Positions 1,730-61,902 are shown, counted from the stretch's first letter. The stretch is DNA of 64,000 nucleotides from Bacillus subtilis subsp. subtilis str. 168 (GCF_000009045.1 NC_000964.3:2604001-2668000); one strand, 5' to 3'. The notes: generated by a model not told the origin, from the letters alone. A program made the numbers and translations.

Positions 1730-3769
1730 TTATTTTACAATAAGGGCATTCATATTCGCAAAGGACTTGATCTCATCCGCCAAGCTTACCATTTGCGCTA
1801 AACGATTTGCCTTTAATGACTCATTATCCGCTATAACCATTGTATGATCGAAGTAAGCATCGATCGGTTCTTTTAAGGCTGCAAGTGAAGCAAGCGCCGC
1901 CTCATAATCTTTTTTGCTGAAGTTTTCCTGCAGATTTTGCTTCGCTGTTTGGTAGGCATCAAACAGTTTTGCTTCGTATTCATTTTCAAACAGATCAGGC
2001 TGAATGTCTCCGCGGACTCCTTTTTTGCTGATAGAGATCACTCGGCCTAACGCTTCGGCTGTTTCCTTAAAGCCAGGTGCACCAAGCTTTTGCTCCAGTA
2101 CTTGTGCTTTATGCAGCGCAGAGTACGGCTCAAGCTCAGAGCTTTCCAGCACGGCGTCAATGACATCATGTCTGATTTGTTCAGCATTCAAGACATATTT
2201 CAAGCGCTGAGTGAAGAAATCCAGCAGTTCATTTTCTTTATCGGTTTGAACGAAAGTAAGCAGCTCTTCAAATGAAATTCCCCAGTTGCGGTCAAGAAGA
2301 ATCGCAACAATACCGCTTGCTTGGCGGCGCAGTCCGTAAGGGTCCTGGGAACCGGTCGGAATTACGCCGATAGAGAAGAATGAAGCGATTGTGTCAAGCT
2401 TATCCGCCATTGCTACAACAGCTCCGGTGAAAGTAGAAGGCGTTTCTCCGCCCGCTGATCTAGGCATATAATGTTCATTAACTGCCGCAGCCACAGCTTC
2501 ATCTTCGCCAAGCATTCTCGCATACTTTTCGCCCATAATTCCTTGAAGTTCAGGGAATTCATATATCATATGCGTCACAAGGTCGAATTTAGAAATTTCA
2601 GCAGCCCGCTTCACATGTTTTAATGTATCTTCATCAGCCTGAAGACGAACGGCAAGTTTCTCTGCGATTGATGTGACTCTCCTAACCTTATCAGCAAGAG
2701 AACCAAGCTCTTCATGGAAAACGATATTTTCAAGCTTCTTCACATTTGCATCAATGTTTAGTTTCTGATCTTCTTTGTAGAAGAATGAAGCATCAGATAA
2801 ACGTGCGCGCAGCACTTTTTCATTGCCTCGGGCCACATTTTCAATCGCGTGGCTGTTGCCGTTTCGGACTGTGATAAAGTGAGGCAGCAGGTCACCGTTT
2901 TTGTCTTTGACAGGGAAGTAGCGCTGATGCTCTTTCATTGTCGTGACAAGCACTTCTTCAGGAATTGACAGAAACTCGGATTCAAATGAACCGTAAAGAG
3001 CTGTCGGGTATTCTACTAAATGATTCACTTCATCAAGAAGGTCTTCGTCAACTGGAATGCTCCAATTGTTTTCAGCAGCCATTGTTTCCAGCTGAGATTG
3101 AATCATTTGCTTTCGGACGCTAGGATCAGCAATAACATGCTGTCCTTTGAGCTGCTCTTCATAAGCTGAAGGTGATTCAATTGACACTTCATGTCCGAGG
3201 AAACGGTGTCCCTGTGTTGTCCGTCCAGACTCAACGTTTGTGATCGAAAATGGAATGACATCCTGTCCAAATAATGCGACAATCCATTTGATCGGTCGGA
3301 TATAACGCAAATCTTCATTTCCCCAGCGCATGTTTTTCGGGAAATGCAAGCTTGTAATTAAACCGCTCAATTCTGGCAGAAGCGACTTCGTTTCTTGGCC
3401 GGCTTGGAATTTTTGCACGAATACATACTCTATGCCTTTTACTTCTTTGATGTACAGGTCTTCCACATTTGCGCCTTGGCCTTTTGAAAAGCCGATTGCC
3501 GCTTTTGTCCAGTTCCCGTCCGCATCAAGGGCAATTTTTTTCGCAGGCCCTTTTGCTTCTTCTTTTATATCATCCTGCTTTTCTGCGACATCCTTAACGA
3601 ACACAGCAAGACGTCTCGGTGTATTGAAGAGTTTCACTTCACCGTGAGTAATATTTTTTTCTTTAAGCCAGCCTGTCAGCTTGTCGCCAAGCTGAACCAT
3701 GCTTTCATTCAAAAAGCGCGCCGGCATTTCCTCTAATCCGATCTCTAAAAGTAAATCCTGTTTACTCAT
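1730..3769 (-). CDS. glyS: Glycyl-tRNA synthetase beta subunit
   Basis: 679 aa; [12 protein letters not shown] start, [21 protein letters not shown] motifs. Confidence 0.97.
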
Positions 3770-4649
3770 GAGAAGAACCCTCCCCTTTAAGCATTGGGAA
3801 CCCTAGTTTTTCTCGTTCCTCATAGTAGGTTTTTGCTACTTTTCTAGCTAAATTCCGCACTCTTGCGATATAGCCCGTCCGCTCGGTAACAGAGATCGCA
3901 CCTTTGGCATCAAGCAGGTTGAAAGTGTGCGAGCATTTCAGCACATAGTCATATGCTGGATGAACAAGTCCGTTGTCCATTTGCTTGATCGCTTCTTTTT
4001 CATATGTGCTGAACAATTGGAACAGCATATCGACGTCTGATGTTTCAAACGTATAAACAGAATGCTCATATTCAGCCATCATGAATAAATCTTTTACTGT
4101 AAACCCTGACGTCCATTCCAAGTCAAACACGTTTTCTTTATCCTGGATATAAGACGCGAGACGCTCAATTCCATACGTAATCTCTACAGAAACGGGTTTA
4201 CACTCTAATCCCCCGACCTGCTGGAAATACGTAAATTGTGTTATTTCCATTCCGTCAAGCCAAACTTCCCAGCCTAGACCCGCGCAGCCTAAAGACGGAT
4301 TCTCCCAGTTGTCTTCAACAAAGCGAATATCGTGCTCAAGCGGATCAATTCCAAGAGCACGCAAGGAATCCAAATACAGCTCTTGAATGTTATCAGGTGA
4401 CGGTTTAATAATGACCTGGAACTGATGATGCTGATACAGTCTGTTCGGGTTCTCCCCGTAGCGGCCGTCTGCCGGACGTCTGGAAGGCTCTACATAAGCC
4501 ACTTTCCACGGCTCAGGACCGATACTGCGCAAAAATGTATACGGGCTCATCGTGCCGGCTCCTTTTTCTACATCGTAAGCCTGCATAAGCACACAGCCCT
4601 GACTGGACCAATGCTTTTGCAAGGTTAGAATCATGTCTTGAATATTCAT
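3762..4649 (-). CDS. glyQ: Glycyl-tRNA synthetase alpha subunit
   Basis: Start moved to ATG 4649 (MNIQDMIL) with SD GGAGGTG at 4662-4656; [18 protein letters not shown] and EITYGIER motifs; overlaps the glyS start by 8 nt. Confidence 0.97.
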
Positions 4650-4696
4650 TTCAAGCACCTCCACTTTTCTTTCATAAGTTGACTGCGGCAGCAACC

Positions 4697-4914
4697 AAAA
4701 AACTCCCGTCTCTATGCTTGCCAGCCGCAAACATAGGGACGAGAGTTCTCCCGCGGTTCCACCCTAGTTGCTGAGAACAAAATCCCAGCCTCTTTTTTAA
4801 AATTGCTCAAGAATGCCTTTCGTTGCGTGCTCATCCTTAGCTTACACCGCCCTAAGGTCGCTTTCATGAGGTAAACGCAAGTACTTCTTTCTCTCACTGC
4901 AACATATTTTATAA
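4697..4914 (-). ncRNA. glyQS T-box riboswitch leader (Gly specifier GGC)
   Basis: T-box AACTAGGGTGGAACCGCGG at 4769-4751; specifier GGC at 4817-4815 in cacgcaacgaaaGGCattc; terminator CTCGTCCCTATG...CATAGAGACGGGAG-TTTTTT at 4743-4697. Confidence 0.95.
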
Positions 4915-4920
4915 TAAATG

Positions 4921-4949
4921 ATCATATAAAAAGATGGACCAAATGTCAA
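4921..4949 (-). promoter_or_regulatory. sigmaA promoter of glyQS
   Basis: TTGACA(4949-4944)-17 bp-TATGAT(4926-4921); the -35 contains the recO TGA stop. Confidence 0.85.
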
Positions 4950-5713
4950 CTTTTGTTTTCACCCATAAGATGTTTCATGCTTTCCATTTGATCTAAAAAG
5001 CGCTTTGATTTTAAATACAATCCCGAATATTCTTCGTAATATAAATCAATCACTTGCTTTAATTCAGCTTTTGTTTCCTCTTTTAAGGACACATTGCCGA
5101 GTCTCGACAGATCAAAATAGTAAAAGAGCCTTAACAGCCTTGCCGTTTGCGGTTTAATCGGTATCCTGTAAGGATCTTTTTCAAAACAGCGGTGGCATAT
5201 AAAACCATTATCACGAACAGAGAAATGAAAGGTTCCGTCTTGGCTTTTACAATGTACACAATGATTCAGCTCAGGATACAGGCCCATGACACCGAGCATC
5301 TTCATTTGAACAATGAAGGTGATAACATCCGGATCTGTTCCTTCATTCAACTGTTTTAATGATTCTAATATGAATTCAAATAAATAAGGATTTGGCTTTT
5401 TTTCTTCTGTGCCTCTGTCGACTAACTCAGCAACATAGGCAGCATATGCTGTTAAAAACAAGTCTTCCCTGATGCCTCTCATGCTGAGGATCATTTCCCC
5501 CTGCTGAAGCGTTCCGAGGCCCGATGTTTTTTGCATTAAGAAAGAACCATACAAAAAGGGCTGGCTGACTGCTGATAAACGGCTGTTCGGTTTTTTGGCG
5601 CCTCGTGCCATAACACCTATTTTTCCGTGTTCTCTTGTCAGTAATGTTACGATTTTATTCGTCTCTCCGTAATCATTTGTGCGAAGAACGATCCCTTCAC
5701 ATTTTGTCAGCAT
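4946..5713 (-). CDS. recO: DNA repair protein RecO
   Basis: 255 aa; [27 protein letters not shown] and CVHC...CHRC zinc motif. Confidence 0.96.
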
Positions 5714-5749
5714 TTCCGCACCTTCCTCAAGCAGGAGCGGCCAAGAGGT

Positions 5750-5893
5750 TTATAAAATTGGATAATCAAATCGGGCTAGCTCATCTTCTAGTTCTTCGGG
5801 TCTTTCCATGTTCTCTTTTTCCAGTTCTTTAAAAAGAAGATACGTATCAACATTTCCTGTTTGAGAAAATACGTTCCAGGTAAAATTCAACAC
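5750..5893 (-). CDS. yqzL: YqzL-like small protein (47 aa)
   Basis: Read by hand: GTG TTG AAT TTT ACC TGG... = MLNFTWNVFSQTGNVDTYLLFKELEKENMERPEELEDELARFDYPIL*; SD AGAAAGGTGG upstream; below the ORF-track cutoff. Confidence 0.8.
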   Translation of the reverse strand: MLNFTWNVFSQTGNVDTYLLFKELEKENMERPEELEDELARFDYPIL

Positions 5894-6040
5894 AAGAAAC
5901 CCACCTTTCTGTAGTTAAACTAGCTTACCTAAACTCCAAATTCTTACCTTTATCTTGACCAGATGTCCTCCATTTCATGTTAAACAAAATTTGCTAATGT
6001 ATCCCTGTTCCTGTGAGATAATGACACACACGGGAAGAGA

Positions 6041-7352
<1,312 letters not shown>

Positions 7353-7382
7353 TTACCTATAATGGTACCGCTATCACTTTAT

Positions 7383-7411
7383 ATTTTACATAATCGCGCG
7401 CTTTTTTTCAC
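7383..7411 (-). promoter_or_regulatory. sigmaA-like promoter upstream of cdd-era
   Basis: GTGAAA(7411-7406)-17 bp-TAAAAT(7388-7383). Confidence 0.5.
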
Positions 7412-7455
7412 GCCCATTTCTAAAAATGTAAAATAAATGTAAGAATTTTCAGCCA

Positions 7456-7827
7456 TTACAGCTTTGGCAAAAAAATAAGTAAACCAATGATACACGAAAT
7501 CACGGCAAAAACGCAAACAGCCCCGGCGGCAGCGTCCTTGGCCGCTTTAGCAAGAGGGTGATGTTTGTCAGTTATTAAATCAACCGTATGTTCAATGGCT
7601 GTATTTAAAAGTTCAAGCGAAAACATACCACCTATCAAAAGGAATATAATCATCCACTCAATAATGCTGAGCTCTACAAGGAAGCCGCAAATGAGAACAG
7701 CGCAGGCGGCTGCGGCATGAAATTGGAAATTCCGCTCCGTCCGCGCTGTTTCCCATATGCCCCGGCCTGCATGCACGAAGCTTTTGAAGAATCGATTCAG
7801 CTCATTTCTATGATCTTTTGAGTCCAT
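7456..7827 (-). CDS. dgkA: Undecaprenol kinase (DgkA family)
   Basis: 123 aa; ELLNTAIE and AKAAKDAAAGAV motifs, three hydrophobic segments. Confidence 0.93.
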   Translation of the reverse strand: MDSKDHRNELNRFFKSFVHAGRGIWETARTERNFQFHAAAACAVLICGFLVELSIIEWMIIFLLIGGMFSLELLNTAIEHTVDLITDKHHPLAKAAKDAAAGAVCVFAVISCIIGLLIFLPKL

Positions 7828-8281
7828 AAGCGTCCAGCAATTCCTTTTGCTTAGTAAACATCTCCTCTTCTTCCTCTTTCGTCATATGGTCATATCCTAA
7901 AAGGTGCAGAAATCCGTGTACAGCTAGAAATCCGAGCTCTCTTTTAAAAGAATGATTATACTCCTCTGCCTGCTCTCTTGTGCGATCGGCACTGATGATA
8001 ATATCACCTAAAACCGGAGGCATTTCGGCGCCCACGATTTCGATCTCGCCTTCTCCCTCTTCTTCAAGAGCAAATGAGATGACATCTGTCGGAGCATCCT
8101 TTCCCCGGTATTCTTTGTTAATCTGATGTATGTCATCATTGGAAACAATCGTGACAGAAACTTCAGCCTGATCCTGAACGCCTTCACGCTCAGCGGCAAA
8201 TTGAAGCAGATTTTCTACTTCTTTGAGCATCTCTTCTGAGACGCTTCCCGTTTCATCAACGATATCAATCAGTAAACTCAT
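7808..8281 (-). CDS. ybeY: rRNA maturation endoribonuclease YbeY (yqfG)
   Basis: 157 aa; NKEYRGKDAPTDVISF and HGFLHLLGYDH. Confidence 0.96.
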   Translation of the reverse strand: MSLLIDIVDETGSVSEEMLKEVENLLQFAAEREGVQDQAEVSVTIVSNDDIHQINKEYRGKDAPTDVISFALEEEGEGEIEIVGAEMPPVLGDIIISADRTREQAEEYNHSFKRELGFLAVHGFLHLLGYDHMTKEEEEEMFTKQKELLDAYGLKRS

Positions 8282-10417
8282 CTATTTCACCTTCTTAGTA
8301 GCCTCCGGATATTCAATCCGGGAGTGGAAAATTCCTTTTAATGTTGCACAGAGCGTTTTTGCGATTGTATCCAGCTCTTTAAATGTCAAATCGCATTCAC
8401 TGAACTGTCCGTCCTGAAGCTTATCGGATATAATACCCCGGACAAGCTTTTCAATTCGTTCAGGATTTGGATTGTGCATGGATCTGACGGCCGCTTCAAC
8501 ACTGTCGGCCACTGATATAATTGCGGCTTCCTTTGACTGCGGCTTCGGTCCCGGATAACGGAACTCTTCCTCTGTAATCTGGTCGCCTTTTTCCTTCGCT
8601 TTATAGTAAAAAAACTTTAAAAGCGAGGTTCCATGATGCTGCTCAGCAATATCGACAAGCTCTTTCGGAAATTTATAGCTTCTCAGCATATTCGCACCGT
8701 CTGTCGTATGCGAGATAATAATATTTTTGCTCAACTGAGGTGACAGCTTGTCATGCGGATTGTCAATATTCATTTGGTTTTCAATAAAATATTGCGGGCG
8801 CTTTGTTTTTCCGAGATCGTGATAATATGCGCCGACTCTTGCAAGCAAACCATTAGCCCCAACCGCTTCACAGGCTGCCTCTGATAAATTGGCAACCATT
8901 ACACTGTGATGATATGTACCTGGTGTTTCCGTCAGTATTTTGCGCAATAGCGGATGGTTAGGATTAGACAGCTCGAGCAGCCTCATGGTGGATAAAATGC
9001 CAAAGCCCGTCTCAAAAAACGGCATCAGACCGATGATCAATACAGATGAAGCAAACCCCGACACAACCCCCATGAGCATTAACGTGCCGATTTCAAGACC
9101 CGACAGCGCAGTGTTCTGGATCAATAATAAGGATAGAACGACAACCATATTAATAAACGCCACGAAAAGTCCGGTCTGCAAAATCTTTGATCTTGCATTG
9201 TGTTTTCCTAAAAATAATACACCTGAAATGCCGCTGATCAAATAATAAATCCCTATGACATAATTGAATGTTCCTGTCACACCCTGATTAAACATCATAC
9301 TTCCGCAAATCGCAAGAATGATACTTCCCAAAATGGCAATGCGTTCATTCATCAGCAGTTTGATTAAGATGGCGCCGGCCGCAATGGGGACCAGATAGCC
9401 GATATTATTATACTCCATCTTCTGAAACAAACTGACAACCTCCATGATCACAAGCAAAAGTGTTGTGATTATGGAGAATAACAGAATGGATTGGTTTTTA
9501 AACTTCAGATTTTGTTTCTGTTTTTCAAAATAATATACAAGTGTTGCAATGAAAAGTCCGATCATAATCAATAGCCCGCTGATCGGTTTAAAGAGATTTG
9601 AGTTATTTAATAACCCGGTCAGCTCAAGTTTCCTGTACACTTCCCGATCAATGAGGTCATTTTCTTCCACGAGCACTTGCCCCTGTTTGATTTGAACCTG
9701 CTGGACATTATCTGAGGCTTCCTGCCGTTTTGCCTCTGTTGCTTTCGGATCGAAGACGTAATTCGGAATAATAGCAAAACGCCCGATTTCTGTCGCGGCT
9801 CCCAAGTATTTAGACGGAATAGAATTGCTCTTTAGCTCTTTTTCTACCTTATCCTTTGCATCAGATAGTTTATCCGAAGGGATTTCACTGCTCATGACCG
9901 TATTTACCGCGGTAATGACCGTATCTCTGACAAAAGAAAAGTCTTCACTGTCTGCTTTCAGCAATGTCTTGATGGAATCCTCCGATATAGAATCATTCAC
10001 ATCTGATGTCAATTTGTCCTTTACAGATTTGACCATTGATTTTTCCGATGGTGATTTACTGCCTTCTTCCGATGATTTTTTCACTTCACTAATACTGTCG
10101 AATATTGATGACACAAGGTCAATCCGATTGTCTGTATATTCTTTTTTTAATGTATATTGATCTTCAACCGCGTCCTCAGCGGCTTGCTTTTTTTCCTCTG
10201 TGGCTTTTTGATCTTCTACGGTTGCCGGAGCGTAAATGGTCTTGTCGCTGACTGAAAACAGGTCTAAATCAAGTGTTTCCGGCTTAACATGTACAAAGAG
10301 CAAAGCAAACATAATGGCAGCCAGCAGAAGATACAGCAGTACATGCATGGAGCGGGCATTTTTAAAACTGCTCCATTTTTTTGAGCTGCTTTTGGTCTTA
10401 GCCTTCTTTTTCAACAC
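8282..10417 (-). CDS. pgpH: c-di-AMP phosphodiesterase, 7TM-HD family (yqfF)
   Basis: Start moved to GTG 10417 (SD AGAGGAGG); extracellular domain, seven TM helices, HD domain (GTYHHS, YYHDLGK, EQHHGT, VADSVEA). Confidence 0.92.
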   Translation of the reverse strand: MLKKKAKTKSSSKKWSSFKNARSMHVLLYLLLAAIMFALLFVHVKPETLDLDLFSVSDKTIYAPATVEDQKATEEKKQAAEDAVEDQYTLKKEYTDNRIDLVSSIFDSISEVKKSSEEGSKSPSEKSMVKSVKDKLTSDVNDSISEDSIKTLLKADSEDFSFVRDTVITAVNTVMSSEIPSDKLSDAKDKVEKELKSNSIPSKYLGAATEIGRFAIIPNYVFDPKATEAKRQEASDNVQQVQIKQGQVLVEENDLIDREVYRKLELTGLLNNSNLFKPISGLLIMIGLFIATLVYYFEKQKQNLKFKNQSILLFSIITTLLLVIMEVVSLFQKMEYNNIGYLVPIAAGAILIKLLMNERIAILGSIILAICGSMMFNQGVTGTFNYVIGIYYLISGISGVLFLGKHNARSKILQTGLFVAFINMVVVLSLLLIQNTALSGLEIGTLMLMGVVSGFASSVLIIGLMPFFETGFGILSTMRLLELSNPNHPLLRKILTETPGTYHHSVMVANLSEAACEAVGANGLLARVGAYYHDLGKTKRPQYFIENQMNIDNPHDKLSPQLSKNIIISHTTDGANMLRSYKFPKELVDIAEQHHGTSLLKFFYYKAKEKGDQITEEEFRYPGPKPQSKEAAIISVADSVEAAVRSMHNPNPERIEKLVRGIISDKLQDGQFSECDLTFKELDTIAKTLCATLKGIFHSRIEYPEATKKVK

Positions 10418-56986: not shown

Positions 56987-57101
56987 GTAAAATGACACAG
57001 ATCGAATGATTCATTTCCACCATTTGATCCACATAACAGTTAGTTTCATCATTCTTCCATGGTAATATTTTGTTATGACGATTAAATGAAAGGATATGAT
57101 C

Positions 57102-58697
57102 ATGAAAGTATTTGAAGCCAAAACCTTGCTCACCGAGGCTGAAAAGCGAGCACAGGAATACAAAGATTTAAAAAGTAAAATGGTCAAATTAAAGAAAGCG
57201 TTCAAAGCTGTTGCAGATTTAGATGATAGCGAGTTTTCAGGCAAAGGCGCTAATAACATTAAATCATTTTATGAAGATCAAGCTGGCATTGCTGACCAAT
57301 GGATTGATTTAATTGAGATGAAAATTTCTTTCTTAACGAGTATTCCTGGTTTTTTAGAAGATGCCAACTTATCAGATGCCTACATAGAAGAAACCTTTTT
57401 AGCGCATGAGCTTGCTAACGCCTACACCAAATCAAAATCCATTATGTCTGAACAGAAAAAAGCCATGAAAGATATATTAAATGATATCAACGATATACTG
57501 CCTTTGGATCTGTTCTCGACAGAAACTTTTAAAAATGAACTTTCGTCTGCCGAAAAGAAACGAAAAGAAGCCATTGAGAAAATGGATGAAGTTGACCAAA
57601 ACTTAACATCAGAATACGGACTATCAGAAGCAAATGAACAAATGATTCAAGCTGATTATCAAGCTTTAATGAATGCGACAGCAAAAGGCAAAAGCGCCTC
57701 TCCTATTCACTATAATGCGAAGGCTTATAGAGACAGTGAGATTCACAAGATGACTGAGGATGTAAAGAAACAATCAACAGACTACATCTCTTTTAAGGAC
57801 CAACAGGCGGAACAAAGAAGAATTGCAAAAGAACAAGAAGAACTGGCGAACAGACCATGGTATGAAAAGTCTTGGGATGCTGTTTGTAATTTTACAGGAG
57901 AGGTCTCTGGATATTATGATTATAAAAGAGCCGCTGATGGGGTTGATCCTGTTACCGGCGAAAAGCTAACTGCTGGACAACGGGTCGCTGCCGGTGCAAT
58001 GGCTGCGGCAGGATACATCCCTATCGTAGGATGGGCAGGTAAATTAGCTAAAGGTGGAAAAGCTGTTTATTCAACAAGTAAAGCATTGTATAGAGCAGAC
58101 AAAGCTCTCGATGTATATAAAACACCTAAGACATTCCATGCCCTTCAAAACTCCAGCAAAGGACTTTATGGACTTGCTTCTGCAAATGGTTTTAGTGAAG
58201 CTATAACAGGACGCGATATGTTCGGGAATAAAGTCTCCAAAGAGAGGCAAGAACAGAGCCTTAGTGGTGCAATGGCAATGTTGGTTCCTTTCGGAGCTCG
58301 CGGAATTAACAAAAAGCTTAATGCAAAATCAAGTTCTCGAGTTAGCGAAGCATCGACTAACACCAGCAAAAAACCTAAAGTTCCTAAAACGTACAAAAGA
58401 CCAACTTATTTCCGTAAAGGCGTTAGAGATAAGGTTTGGGAAAATGCTAAGGATTCAACCGGATCTGTTAAAGACCCGTTAACAAAACAAGTAATGAAAA
58501 AAGATGAACCATGGGATATGGGTCATAAACCAGGTTATGAATTTAGAAAACATCAACAAAGTGCGATGGAAAGAAATATTAGTCGAAAGCAATTTTTAGA
58601 TGAACATAATAATCCAGACCACTATCAACCCGAATTACCTTCCTCCAATAGGAGTCATAAAGGGGAAGATATGACGGATGATTACTTTGGAGATTAA
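57102..58697 (+). CDS. yqcG: LXG-domain type VII-secreted nuclease toxin
   Basis: ATG 57102 (531 aa); LXG N-terminus ([13 protein letters not shown]), pre-toxin DPVTGEKL region, C-terminal WDMGHKPG...ELPSSNRSH (GH-E/HNH-like nuclease). Confidence 0.92.
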
Positions 58698-58711: not shown

Positions 58712-59290
58712 ATGGGCGTAACACAAGAAAATAAAGTAATTGCTAGAACAGTTTTAGGAGCTTTTGGGGGGAAACCGAAGGTTACGAAATATTGGGATGA
58801 TAACAAGAATAGCAGCATAGATATTTTATCGGTTAGTGACCAGCCTCAGGAAGGTATCACGTCATATTCAACTCTAGGTTTGTCGGATCATTCTATTAAT
58901 TATGAGGTGAATGGCACTCCGTTGCGGATAGAAATCGTAGCTGCAATGGAGTCAGCTTCAGACATATATGCTAATGTTTTATCAACTTGTGCCTTTAATA
59001 TAATCAACTCAAATTTCACTTGTGCACCAGGTGTTATTTTTAAAAATGTGATTAGTATGTATGATCAGGAAACCGACATGAAACATATTATGTTCGTTCC
59101 CCCATTTTTATGGGAGGAAGATTTAGAACTACTTGAATTTAGTAACAAAAATGTTACTTGGCTAATGGCTTTACCTATATCCGAAGGAGAATTGCAAGTA
59201 GCTGAAAAACACGGCTCAGATTATTTACAAGATCTTCTGGAATCAAAACAGATTGATATTTTTGATATAAAGAGAGAATCTGTTGTTTAA
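58712..59290 (+). CDS. yqcF: Immunity protein for YqcG (SUFU-like family)
   Basis: 192 aa directly after the toxin; YSTLGLSD, CAPGVIF, VTWLMALPISEGE. Confidence 0.88.
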   Translation: MGVTQENKVIARTVLGAFGGKPKVTKYWDDNKNSSIDILSVSDQPQEGITSYSTLGLSDHSINYEVNGTPLRIEIVAAMESASDIYANVLSTCAFNIINSNFTCAPGVIFKNVISMYDQETDMKHIMFVPPFLWEEDLELLEFSNKNVTWLMALPISEGELQVAEKHGSDYLQDLLESKQIDIFDIKRESVV

Positions 59291-59407: not shown

Positions 59408-59554
59408 ATGATTAATGAAGAAAAACACACAAACCCTCAAGCTAATAACAATATATTTGGAAGGATAGATACCTGGTATTCTGTTCATAGGAGTTCGAAC
59501 TTGAGGGAAAATAAAGAAAGACCAGCTTATTATGTGGCTGGTCCTTATCTTTAA
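59408..59554 (+). CDS. 48-aa ORF, probable gene remnant
   Basis: SD AAGGAG 6 nt before ATG; MINEEKHTNPQANNNIFGRIDTWYSVHRSSNLRENKERPAYYVAGPYL*; no family recognised. Confidence 0.3.
   Translation: MINEEKHTNPQANNNIFGRIDTWYSVHRSSNLRENKERPAYYVAGPYL
59510..59543 (-). terminator. Terminator of yqxI-yqxJ
   Basis: GACCAGC/GCTGGTC inverted repeat followed by TTTCTTTATTTT on the - strand. Confidence 0.6.
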
Positions 59555-59913
59555 TTAAAGAAATGGTTATGTAAAGCTTTAGAAAATCCAAAACCTTCTT
59601 CTGGTCCCTTTAACCAGAGAGAAATAAACTTTTCGAAATCCACTTCTTTTTCAATATCTTTCAAAATTCTTTTAAATTCTTCAGTAAAGTTATGAAGAGA
59701 GACCTCTTCGCCATTTTTAATCTTATCAGTGTACTGGCTCGTTAACTCTCTTAATTCTTGATACTGTTTTTCACTTAAATCATAGGCCAAAACTTGATCA
59801 AATAAGCCAAACCGATCATAATCAGCTGCTAATTGTTGGACTAACCTTAGTTGAAAAGCCTGCTTCTCGACTTTTTTTTCTAGGTTGTCAAGCCTTTCTT
59901 CTACTGTTACCAA
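59551..59913 (-). CDS. yqxJ: YqxJ, small cytoplasmic helical protein (YhaI/DUF1878-like by eye)
   Basis: 120 aa; no hydrophobic segment; starts 15 nt after the yqxI stop. Confidence 0.8.
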   Translation of the reverse strand: MVTVEERLDNLEKKVEKQAFQLRLVQQLAADYDRFGLFDQVLAYDLSEKQYQELRELTSQYTDKIKNGEEVSLHNFTEEFKRILKDIEKEVDFEKFISLWLKGPEEGFGFSKALHNHFFN

Positions 59914-59928
59914 TTCAAATCACCTCAA

Positions 59929-60408
59929 TTAAAAAGCTAAGAAAGTAAATACACTTGCAATAGTTCTAGCTGTAGAAGATTTTACACCAGCATCAATTAG
60001 ATATGAGGAAACCGTGTCAATAATTGCGTCCTCCACAACGTCACCTCGTTTAACTAACTCGTCCAAAGCATCTGCTACATCATCAGTATGTTTTGCGAAT
60101 GTTTTTCCTGCTGATCCACCTAACTCATCGACTACCTCACCAACAATTCTCCCACCATGTCGAAGCGCACTGGCTGTTGCCTTCATTGCTTCTTTAGCAA
60201 TCCATTTTTTAATACCATTTGTGTGAAATTCACCAGATTGTTCAGTTGTATTAGTTGGTAATTCGGATAGTTTAACGGGAGTTTGATAAGTGACTTCCTG
60301 CTGTGCCTGTAATGTTACCTCTTGAGCTTTGGCATGTCCATCCAACGGAAGAACTAATGATAAAGAGAATGTTAATGCAGATGTTGCTAAAAGTAATTTC
60401 TTAAACAT
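59929..60408 (-). CDS. yqxI: YqxI, secreted protein (signal peptide, polar spacer, amphipathic helical C-terminal domain)
   Basis: 159 aa; MFKKLLLATSALTFSLSLVLPLDGHAKA (A-X-A signal-peptidase site). Confidence 0.82.
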   Translation of the reverse strand: MFKKLLLATSALTFSLSLVLPLDGHAKAQEVTLQAQQEVTYQTPVKLSELPTNTTEQSGEFHTNGIKKWIAKEAMKATASALRHGGRIVGEVVDELGGSAGKTFAKHTDDVADALDELVKRGDVVEDAIIDTVSSYLIDAGVKSSTARTIASVFTFLAF

Positions 60409-60537
60409 GAAATCAATCCCTTTCTTTTAAATTATTTACATGTAAATGATAACATTATGTTCAGACTAGAAAAATAATACTTTTTACTCAAATATTAGAA
60501 TAATTTTGAACTATCTGTAACAAAATAAACATAAGTA

Positions 60538-60564
60538 TCTCCTTGAGAAAGATACTCAAGGAGA
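60538..60564 (-). terminator. Terminator after cwlA
   Basis: 10-bp inverted repeat TCTCCTTGAG/CTCAAGGAGA. Confidence 0.65.
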
Positions 60565-60572
60565 CTATTTAT

Positions 60573-61391
60573 TTACTTCAAGAGAGCTTCAAGTTTCGCT
60601 TTCGTTTTTGGTCCGTAAATACCGTCTTGAGTAAGCCCGTACATAGACTGGAATCGTCTAATTGCATCTGCTGTTTTCGGACCATACACGCCGTCAATGC
60701 CGTTGTTTTTTGCTCCTTTATCCGGGTAAAAGTATAGTGCAGCCAGTGCTTTTTGAATTTGTGTTACCTTTTCCCCTCTCATCATTGGGCTCTTCACTTT
60801 AAAAATACCGGATGGTAGCGCATATGACGTTTTTTTGCTGCTTGTGTTTGTTGTTTTCTTTTTAGCTACACTTGCTTTGCTTGAGTTTGTTTTTCCGCCC
60901 AACTTTTTCAATTCTGCTTCAATTGCAGTCTTAACTTGAATCCATCTTCCCTCTGACAAAATGCGGTGCGGGCAATACTTACCATTCCAGTCTTGATGTT
61001 TGCGGACTCGATCAATACCCCATCCACGTTCTTTAAGTAGCTGAGCCACAAACTTAATAGCAAGCTTTTCCGCTGCCTTATATCGTACCCCTCCTGACTT
61101 GCTATAACAAATTTCGACACCAATAGACTTGCGATTCCCTGTACCGTTTGTTCCATCTCCTGTGTGCCAAGCGTTACGATTCGTTGGAATACCTTGAATG
61201 ACTTGTTTATCGTCTACTGCAAAGTGAAAACTTGTTGAGCTAGAGTTATTCTTCATGTAAGAAATCTCATTGGCTGCTGAAGCATCATTCGCAGTGTTAT
61301 GAATAGTGATATATTCAGCTTTCATTGGATTAGGACATTTCAATCCATACTTTGATTTAGAGACTAGATTCTTTACAACTTTAATGGCCAT
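60573..61391 (-). CDS. cwlA: Phage endolysin, N-acetylmuramoyl-L-alanine amidase CwlA
   Basis: 272 aa; ITIHNTAN, SFHFAVD, WHTGDG, KYCPH, C-terminal DGIYGPKT peptidoglycan-binding repeats. Confidence 0.94.
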   Translation of the reverse strand: MAIKVVKNLVSKSKYGLKCPNPMKAEYITIHNTANDASAANEISYMKNNSSSTSFHFAVDDKQVIQGIPTNRNAWHTGDGTNGTGNRKSIGVEICYSKSGGVRYKAAEKLAIKFVAQLLKERGWGIDRVRKHQDWNGKYCPHRILSEGRWIQVKTAIEAELKKLGGKTNSSKASVAKKKTTNTSSKKTSYALPSGIFKVKSPMMRGEKVTQIQKALAALYFYPDKGAKNNGIDGVYGPKTADAIRRFQSMYGLTQDGIYGPKTKAKLEALLK

Positions 61392-61435: not shown

Positions 61436-61858
61436 TTAGCCAGCAGCTTTGTCTGCGTTATTCTTACTCTGTTCTTTTTCGTTCTCAATTGTTTGTAATC
61501 GATCTGTTATTGATGATGGTATTTTAACACCAATCTGTGCTAAGTTTTCAGTTATTGACAAACCTTCATTAGCGATATAAAAAAGAACGGTACCAAAGGT
61601 TAAGACACCGTTCAAATTGAGTACTGTATCAATCACGTTTGCTAAAATGACCGCAAAGAAATTGAGTAGCTTGCGGACATAGCCAAACCATGCGCTTCGA
61701 CTTCGCAGTTTTTTGAATTTCCATGCCTTGATTACTCCTGTTAAAACGTCAATTATGCTAAGTACTAGAAGTAAATCAAGGTACTTCACCCCTCCAAATA
61801 AATATACTCTTGCTAAATCTAATGTTTCAAAATTGATAAACAAACTTGTCTCCTCCAT
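61436..61858 (-). CDS. yqxH: Phage holin (phi29 gp14 / toxin-secretion holin type)
   Basis: ATG 61858 (140 aa); IIDVLTGVIKA, GYVRK, ANEGLSITENLAQIGV. Confidence 0.9.
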   Translation of the reverse strand: MEETSLFINFETLDLARVYLFGGVKYLDLLLVLSIIDVLTGVIKAWKFKKLRSRSAWFGYVRKLLNFFAVILANVIDTVLNLNGVLTFGTVLFYIANEGLSITENLAQIGVKIPSSITDRLQTIENEKEQSKNNADKAAG

Positions 61859-61902
61859 TCTAATCACCTCCTCCGAGGCAAATAAAAAAGGACAGCCGGA
61901 TC

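Follow-up and report, generated by a model that had tools for sequence, protein, structure and literature searches.

The stretch of DNA considered here, referred to below as the window, comprises 64,000 nt of the chromosome of Bacillus subtilis subsp. subtilis str. 168 (NC_000964.3:2604001-2668000), at whose right end a skin-type prophage of the B. subtilis group has its accessory and lysis genes. Two small genes, yqxI and yqxJ, form the subject of this analysis; on one side they have the lysis genes of the skin prophage, and on the other the yqcG/yqcF LXG cassette, on which they converge. B. subtilis 168 has the best-annotated of all Gram-positive genomes, yet neither yqxI nor yqxJ has an assigned function. 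An earlier reading of the locus, made from the sequence only, had taken the two genes to encode an undescribed secreted bacteriocin precursor and its cytoplasmic immunity protein. What emerges is that yqxI–yqxJ is a self-contained, horizontally mobile two-gene operon, the first gene of which encodes a Sec-exported protein ending in a conserved domain with a helical model, and the second a soluble partner with which the first is strictly paired. The further interpretation, that the operon is an inter-bacterial toxin–immunity pair of a new sequence family, is one for which we judge the chances to be about even.

The arrangement described in the sequence-only reading, with yqxJ placed 15 nt 3' of yqxI, a joint terminator, phage lysis genes on one side and the LXG cassette on the other, is the arrangement found (Table 1). 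The short gap between the two genes holds a ribosome-binding site for yqxJ, which implies that they are co-transcribed. Moreover, terminators flank the pair, the upstream one belonging to the endolysin gene cwlA, and yqcF has a separate terminator of its own. In other words, yqxI and yqxJ make up a separate bicistronic operon, split from the cwlA lysis cassette. Necessarily, with the cwlA terminator in between, the operon's own promoter would have to sit in the region immediately upstream of yqxI (60409-60536), where a scan of all 128 nt for the sigma-70 consensus gave no convincing promoter. On the + strand the genes rapE-phrE, encoding a Rap phosphatase and a Phr peptide, come before yqcG. 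Published transcriptomes contain antisense RNAs S974/S975 opposite cwlA, together with a predicted antisense RNA to yqxI (59929-61391, + strand).

Table 1. Features of the yqxI–yqxJ locus and its neighbours, in window coordinates.
Feature	Position	Strand	Remarks
yqxI coding sequence, stop codon included	59929-60408	-	159 aa, ATG start
yqxI codons 1-28, Sec-type signal peptide	60325-60408	-	MFKK, hydrophobic core and AKA|Q cleavage motif
yqxI codons 29-64, polar acidic disordered spacer	60217-60324	-	isoelectric point (pI) 4.3, grand average of hydropathy (GRAVY) -0.98
yqxI codons 65-159, conserved 95-aa six-helix C-terminal domain	59932-60216	-	from alignments and AlphaFold2 (AF2) model
yqxI/yqxJ intergenic gap	59914-59928	-	15 nt, carries GAGGTGA ribosome-binding site
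yqxJ coding sequence	59551-59913	-	120 aa, TTG start
Intrinsic terminator 3' of yqxJ	59505-59543 (stem 59520-59543 plus U-tract)	-	-15.4 kcal/mol, z -4.0
yqxI upstream region, 128 nt	60409-60536	-	presumed site of the operon's promoter
Terminator hairpin and U-tract of endolysin gene cwlA, upstream of yqxI	60537-60565	-	-18.2 kcal/mol, z -5.4
CwlA endolysin, Amidase_2/PG_binding_1	60573-61391	-	Pfam
Holin	61436-61867	-	Pfam
yqcG, LXG/PT-TG/GH-E nuclease toxin	57096-58697	+	Pfam
yqcF, SUFU-type immunity gene	58712-59290	+	Pfam

The export of YqxI is well documented. Its signal peptide, with a Kyte–Doolittle maximum of 1.69 at residue 14, directs the heterologous Sec secretion of a reporter (PMC5142396), and, according to secondary accounts, the protein was detected in the extracellular proteome (Antelmann 2003, via PMC6527527). 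Such accounts also report a post-transcriptional dependence of its extracellular level on HtrA, to which they assign the role of a chaperone of YqxI (Antelmann 2003, via PMC6527527, PMC5157995). After export a protein of 131 aa would be left, of 14.0 kDa and pI 5.0, the conserved domain of which accounts for 10.0 kDa with a pI of 5.6. In the AF2 model residues 1-62 are disordered (predicted local distance difference test, pLDDT, <50), and residues 63-159 form six helices with block-mean pLDDT values of ~86-97. In the alignment the signal peptide is conserved, the spacer is hypervariable across homologues in both length and sequence, and near-invariance starts exactly at G-[IV]-K-K-W and extends to the final residue (..FTFLAF), the domain ending in an invariant FxFxAF. 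Mean pairwise identity reflects this division, being 67% in the domain but 30% in leader plus spacer, with the partner protein at 42%. At the very end of otherwise unalignable spacers, right before the domain, a hydrophobic-[EQ]-[PT]-x-G motif recurs (VEPYG, IQPFG, IEPRG), its counterpart in the window being FHTNG (60217-60230); to judge from these alignments it could be a candidate processing site or a helix cap.

Within the domain, the first helix has a net charge of +4, the middle helices are acidic and the last helix (SSTARTIASVFTFL) is the most hydrophobic of the six; there is no cysteine and no hydrophobic stretch of transmembrane length. Sequence, hydropathy and AF2 model together thus bear out the earlier description of a Sec signal, a polar disordered spacer and a helical domain of ~95 aa with a cationic start and a hydrophobic end, and the conserved part begins exactly where that reading had set the start of a 'mature' part. 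A qualification applies to its description of the domain as Gly/Ala-rich, there being no special enrichment in the statistical tests made.

YqxJ had been expected to be a small, soluble, helical protein, and it has the properties of one, with a maximum Kyte–Doolittle value of 0.3 (that is, no hydrophobic segment), a pI of 5.0 and an AF2 model of six helices (pLDDT 84.8). A profile of 13 YqxJ-type partners compared with PDB sequences found YhaI (1SED) with an E value of 5.1e-8 and 36.4 bits, the match covering YhaI residues 3-109 of 117. The YqxJ-type partners and YhaI have in common an N-terminal 'RLE.YI..L' helix and an aromatic 'D/P-R-[FY]-x-[LF]-[FW]-D-W' segment. Taken singly, the sequences fall below the DUF1878 (PF08963) gathering threshold of 23 bits, YqxJ scoring 16.0 and the best partner 20.2. 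A Foldseek search of the PDB with the AF2 monomer of YqxJ gave no match and did not return 1SED, which consists of three chains, such that its oligomeric packing may differ. By profile comparison, then, YqxJ is a distant DUF1878/YhaI relative. The term DUF1878 is absent from the searched literature, in which yqxJ itself appears in one table entry only. In this regard the word 'undescribed' in the sequence-only reading was half right: the secretion of YqxI and its dependence on HtrA were already on record, and YqxJ has its distant relatives in DUF1878/YhaI; the YqxI family, its fold and the YqxJ–DUF1878 link appear to be undescribed.

The YqxI family is small. A word-indexed search of 5.8 billion proteins yielded no more than ten clusters of YqxI, which come from Bacillus, Viridibacillus, Lysinibacillus and a small number of metagenomes, and a scan of species-representative genomes gave B. 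rugosus, one Lysinibacillus and nothing else. A profile of the domain, run against 1.84 billion representatives, gave 69 matches at E<=1e-3, of which five (P0025, P0027, P0046, P0050 and P0079) are repeat-protein artefacts and were discarded as large repetitive TPR, HEAT or apolipoprotein-like false positives. On these profile matches the YqxI domain is a sparse superfamily of about 65 representative clusters, with members of ~130-200 aa, and shorter, apparently partial ones, in Bacillales and metagenomes; every member whose annotation was looked up is called 'hypothetical'. In every one of 71 members the domain is at the extreme C-terminus, and in 52 of the 71 the N-terminus is signal-peptide-like. 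The homology of its two main subfamilies to each other is clear from hhalign (98.8%, E 1.4e-16); a divergent branch, the IPD subfamily, is defined by an I-P-D motif after the IADxLD helix.

Neither YqxI nor YqxJ has a significant match in Pfam, NCBIfam, PHROGs or PADLOC, the anti-phage defence models of the last giving none for the pair. An NCBIfam 'QAALIT' match was rejected as spanning the YqxI signal peptide only, and a PHROG 'tail protein' match (E 0.035) was rejected as noise. With the YqxI model, Foldseek found no match in the PDB (best E 0.8, TM 0.3) or in BFVD, and the YqxI profile gave designed WD-repeat noise only against PDB sequences. A tblastn search with YqxI and a member of the IPD subfamily found no match among 72,556 plasmids and 50,697 phage records, and scans of JGI metagenomes likewise found none.

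A YqxJ-type gene lies directly 3' of the YqxI-type gene in 13 of the 14 independent loci, distant subfamilies included; the pair is seen in the window and in loci L001, L002, L004, L005, L007, L011, L014, L023, L026, L027, L028, L031 and L032/33, and at the sole unpaired locus, L030, the contig ends 80 codons on. In each readable locus the partner gene encodes 116-155 aa after a gap of 10-69 nt, or has a 323-aa tandem-duplicated form, and the gaps between the two genes of homologous loci mostly contain GGAGG-like sites. When a hidden Markov model (HMM) of the close partners was compared with all 525 stop-to-stop open reading frames (ORFs) of 15 loci, the matches were downstream ORFs only; in a second HMM round the partners of L027 (2e-11, two tandem domains) and of L031 (1.5e-6) were recognised as well, and hhalign supports the distant partners of L028 (97.5%) and L026 (84%). 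Moreover, the identities among YqxI-type and among YqxJ-type proteins are correlated (Mantel r 0.59, p 0.004), from which it follows that the two genes travel together. The sequence-only reading had made much depend on whether the homologues occur as an adjacent pair; they do. The duplicated partner of L027 (800-1771) is a 323-aa protein made of two YqxJ-type domains in tandem, each recognised by the HMM.

The genomic surroundings of the pair are diverse. Within the B. subtilis group it follows three unrelated endolysins, namely CwlA in the window, a GH25-LysM protein in B. licheniformis (L011/L012) and a 337-aa amidase (L023). In IMG/VR prophage contigs of 39-44 kb a divergent subfamily, again with its partner, occupies the end position. 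It is also found among housekeeping genes at non-phage chromosomal sites (L001, L004, L028), and in L002 it adjoins an integrase on a 9 kb contig. In L005/L006 a 3.6 kb element carries the pair as its sole cargo, there being no further genes on it than Rep_1 and Mob_Pre, with the L005 backbone resembling rolling-circle plasmids of 3.3-5.5 kb. The two ends of the L005 contig (1-30 and 3585-3614) are mutual inverted repeats around a 16-nt palindrome, TAAAATTTAAATTTTA, which, were the element circular, would fold into a long hairpin at the place where the rep gene and the YqxJ-type gene converge; L006 folds back at the same point. The L005 element is likely to be circular.

Two of these loci bear further description. 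In the B. licheniformis locus L011 a 62-codon ORF (1629-1817, + strand), 3' of the yqxJ homologue, ends in ...DGIYGPKTKAKLEALLK, the CwlA C-terminus of the window; it appears to be what remains of a cwlA 3' end after a module swap, in which the pair arrived along with the GH25-LysM endolysin. Converging on the same yqxJ homologue are part of a different LXG-like toxin (399 aa, cut off by the contig end) and a 125-aa downstream gene (1844-3408, - strand), a layout that mirrors yqcG/yqcF in the window but with a different C-terminal domain. In L028 a MacB/FtsX permease, an ABC ATPase and a YknX-like adaptor (6482-9863, - strand) lie ~600 bp beyond the pair, which may be coincidence. The YknWXYZ exporter of B. 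subtilis protects against the SDP toxin.

The YqxI domain has also been shuffled onto another N-terminus. One member of the superfamily, P0034, lacks a signal peptide and has instead, ahead of its YqxI domain (hhalign 96.8%), the PF13699 domain eCIS_core (formerly DUF4157; E 2.4e-9), where eCIS denotes the extracellular contractile injection system; it retains a YqxJ-type gene 12 nt 3'. An N-terminal DUF4157 with a C-terminal toxin is a documented architecture of eCIS toxins (PMC8213781). In this regard it has to be said that the fusion was seen in one cluster, which derives from one metagenome contig, a search for more having given the same cluster, and that no eCIS structural genes were found within +/-10 kb of P0034. 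With one cluster only and no eCIS genes nearby, the fusion is taken as suggestive only.

Taken together, a secreted C-terminal domain, an obligate cytoplasmic partner, carriage at prophage ends and on a minimal plasmid, a neighbouring toxin–immunity cassette and a swap of delivery domain make up the signature of an antagonism module, and it is on this signature that the toxin–immunity reading is built. We infer its working as follows. YqxI would be made as a precursor and exported by Sec, a step for which the literature on its secretion speaks directly; the variable spacer would be a linker or a pro-region, the latter calling for a hypothetical cleavage. The activity would reside in the conserved 95-aa helical bundle, with its cationic amphipathic first helix and its invariant hydrophobic C-terminal helix, which would act upon neighbouring cells devoid of the module, at their membrane or envelope. 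YqxJ, made from the same mRNA and remaining in the cytoplasm, would shield the producing cell and its kin; it could bind the domain, or it could act at the cytoplasmic face of the target, as class IIa immunity proteins do.

A good deal weighs against such a working, beginning with the isolation of the eCIS_core fusion already mentioned. The searched literature contains no report of killing, growth inhibition or immunity by the pair. Skin-cured strains are in wide use and are not known to be sensitive to 168, a property for which mixed cultures have seldom been examined. Exported YqxI is acidic and has no segment of transmembrane length, unlike most membrane-active bacteriocins, and for a toxin exported by Sec an immunity protein that is soluble and stays in the cytoplasm is an awkward match in topology. 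The domain (67% identity) is more conserved than its partner (42%), with no sign of toxin diversification. The AF2 models, moreover, were built on 9-10 sequences (ten homologues for YqxI). Lastly, a BKK delta-yqxI strain has no defect. On the side of the toxin–immunity reading, yqxI knock-down cells were depleted 2.6-fold (adjusted p 0.0078) in a pooled CRISPR interference (CRISPRi) screen of macrocolonies. The authors of the screen explained the knock-down effect by a reverse polar effect on cwlA; our own reading, which is not theirs, is that dCas9 is polar on yqxJ, such that knock-down cells would lose immunity while surrounded by producers.

Among known systems, the pair may be compared with those Sec-dependent class II bacteriocins that have an immunity gene next to them, such as divergicin A (dviA, carried by the 3.4 kb plasmid pCD3.4) and enterocin P. 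As in these, YqxI has a Sec signal peptide in place of a double-glycine leader, the small gene is directly 3' in the same operon and there is no dedicated transporter; in L005, likewise, a ~3.6 kb rolling-circle plasmid has the pair as its sole cargo. Class II bacteriocins are below 10 kDa and usually cationic, whereas YqxI is larger and acidic, with a long variable spacer and no sequence similarity to them. Polymorphic toxins, such as the DUF4157 fusions and YqcG–YqcF, share with the pair a conserved domain at the extreme C-terminus, a small co-varying gene immediately 3' and a patchy distribution on mobile elements; interchangeable delivery modules (Sec signal, eCIS_core) may be a further common point. 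Unlike them, the YqxI domain has two observed delivery types only, the eCIS_core type occurring once, no Pfam Ntox/Tox match for itself or Imm match for its partner, and no evident catalytic motif. The view of the pair as bacteriocin and immunity protein therefore stands in part: a conserved, co-inherited, mobile pair beside a toxin–immunity cassette, with an eCIS_core relative, agrees with it, and the size and acidity of YqxI are unlike class II; its picture of a classical bacteriocin precursor is not supported.

For the partner, the class IIa (pediocin-like) immunity proteins are a precedent, being soluble, cytoplasmic, helical proteins of ~100-120 aa that protect against an extracellular peptide toxin; unlike them, YqxJ has no Pfam EntA_Immun or Foldseek match and is related to DUF1878/YhaI instead. 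A kinship of YqxI with SdpC-like or EntV-like precursors had also been proposed, for which no sequence, profile or fold similarity was detected. Like SdpC and EntV, YqxI is a signal-peptide precursor, and by analogy its active part would be C-terminal to a removed region. SdpI, the immunity protein for SdpC, is a membrane protein, whereas YqxJ is soluble; disulfides are present in SDP and EntV, whereas YqxI is free of cysteine.

Among other explanations the likeliest is that YqxI is a non-toxic secreted effector which works on the producer's own envelope, by superinfection exclusion, wall remodelling or modulation of HtrA or of secretion stress, for example, with YqxJ as a pre-export chaperone or a regulator. 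We regard this as rather unlikely. It accords with the moron position of the pair at prophage ends, with the acidic, non-cationic nature of YqxI and the absence of a known killing phenotype, and with the reported post-transcriptional dependence of extracellular YqxI on HtrA, its described chaperone. Furthermore, the ..FLAF hydrophobic C-terminus resembles ligands of the PDZ domains of HtrA-family proteins, and it may be through PDZ binding of this invariant terminus that the HtrA dependence arises. Private chaperones, however, are seldom needed by Sec substrates, and carriage of the pair as sole cargo of a tiny mobilisable plasmid, as well as at non-phage chromosomal sites, argues for a benefit that is independent of phage biology. 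The eCIS_core fusion, for its part, fits an injected toxin and not an envelope factor that acts on its own cell.

A cell–cell signalling pair is highly improbable by comparison. Here YqxI, or a fragment of it, would be re-imported and sensed by YqxJ, much as mobile elements use Rap-Phr or arbitrium, and the combination of a secreted and a cytoplasmic protein on mobile elements, strictly co-inherited and in the window near rapE-phrE, is what such a system would look like. The conserved part of YqxI, however, is a folded domain of 95 aa and no short peptide; the spacer, which is the usual place of a signalling peptide, is the least conserved part, and YqxJ is without a DNA-binding, TPR or enzymatic domain. 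Less credible still is an accessory role in the phage lysis cassette, with YqxI as a secreted helper of endolysin or holin and YqxJ as its timer, for although the pair is directly 3' of an endolysin in at least three prophage types, a strong terminator separates cwlA from yqxI, the upstream endolysin is not conserved, the pair occurs also on a plasmid and at chromosomal sites without lysis genes, and there is no match in PHROGs or in the 50,697 phage records. A type II toxin–antitoxin module was rejected outright, as it needs both proteins to be cytoplasmic, and YqxI has a functional signal peptide and is found extracellularly.

If the toxin–immunity reading is true, the pair would add a new toxin fold and a new DUF1878-related immunity family to the catalogue of bacterial weapons, and would explain why prophages and a minimal plasmid carry a secreted protein. 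It would also offer a simple account of the discrepancy between CRISPRi and knockout in biofilm screens, and a handle on the HtrA dependence of YqxI. The system is also a convenient one, with two small genes in a laboratory strain for which collections of mutants exist. A wider reading, which we put forward tentatively and consider possible rather than probable, is that the YqxI domain founds a superfamily of ~95-aa helical, probably membrane-active toxins, delivered by Sec or by contractile injection, with DUF1878-type proteins as their cytoplasmic immunity proteins. This would give DUF1878 its first function, in YqxJ and by extension in YhaI, and would mean that B. subtilis 168 contains an unrecognised system of antagonism.

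With regard to YhaI, its gene is situated beside yhaJ in B. subtilis, which is of interest here as a lead only. The genes yhaJ–yhaI may be paralogous to yqxI–yqxJ. BAGEL once flagged B. subtilis yhaJ as bacteriocin-like (PMC1538908), again a lead only, and transposon insertions in yhaJ and in yhaI were each enriched at hour 5 of sporulation (PMC4703394). Among the homologous loci, L004, a metagenome contig, has ecsA/ecsB-type ABC genes (4266-6576) ~3 kb from its pair. As ecsAB and yhaI are situated in the same region of the B. subtilis chromosome, this neighbourhood hints at a yhaI-like position of the L004 copy.

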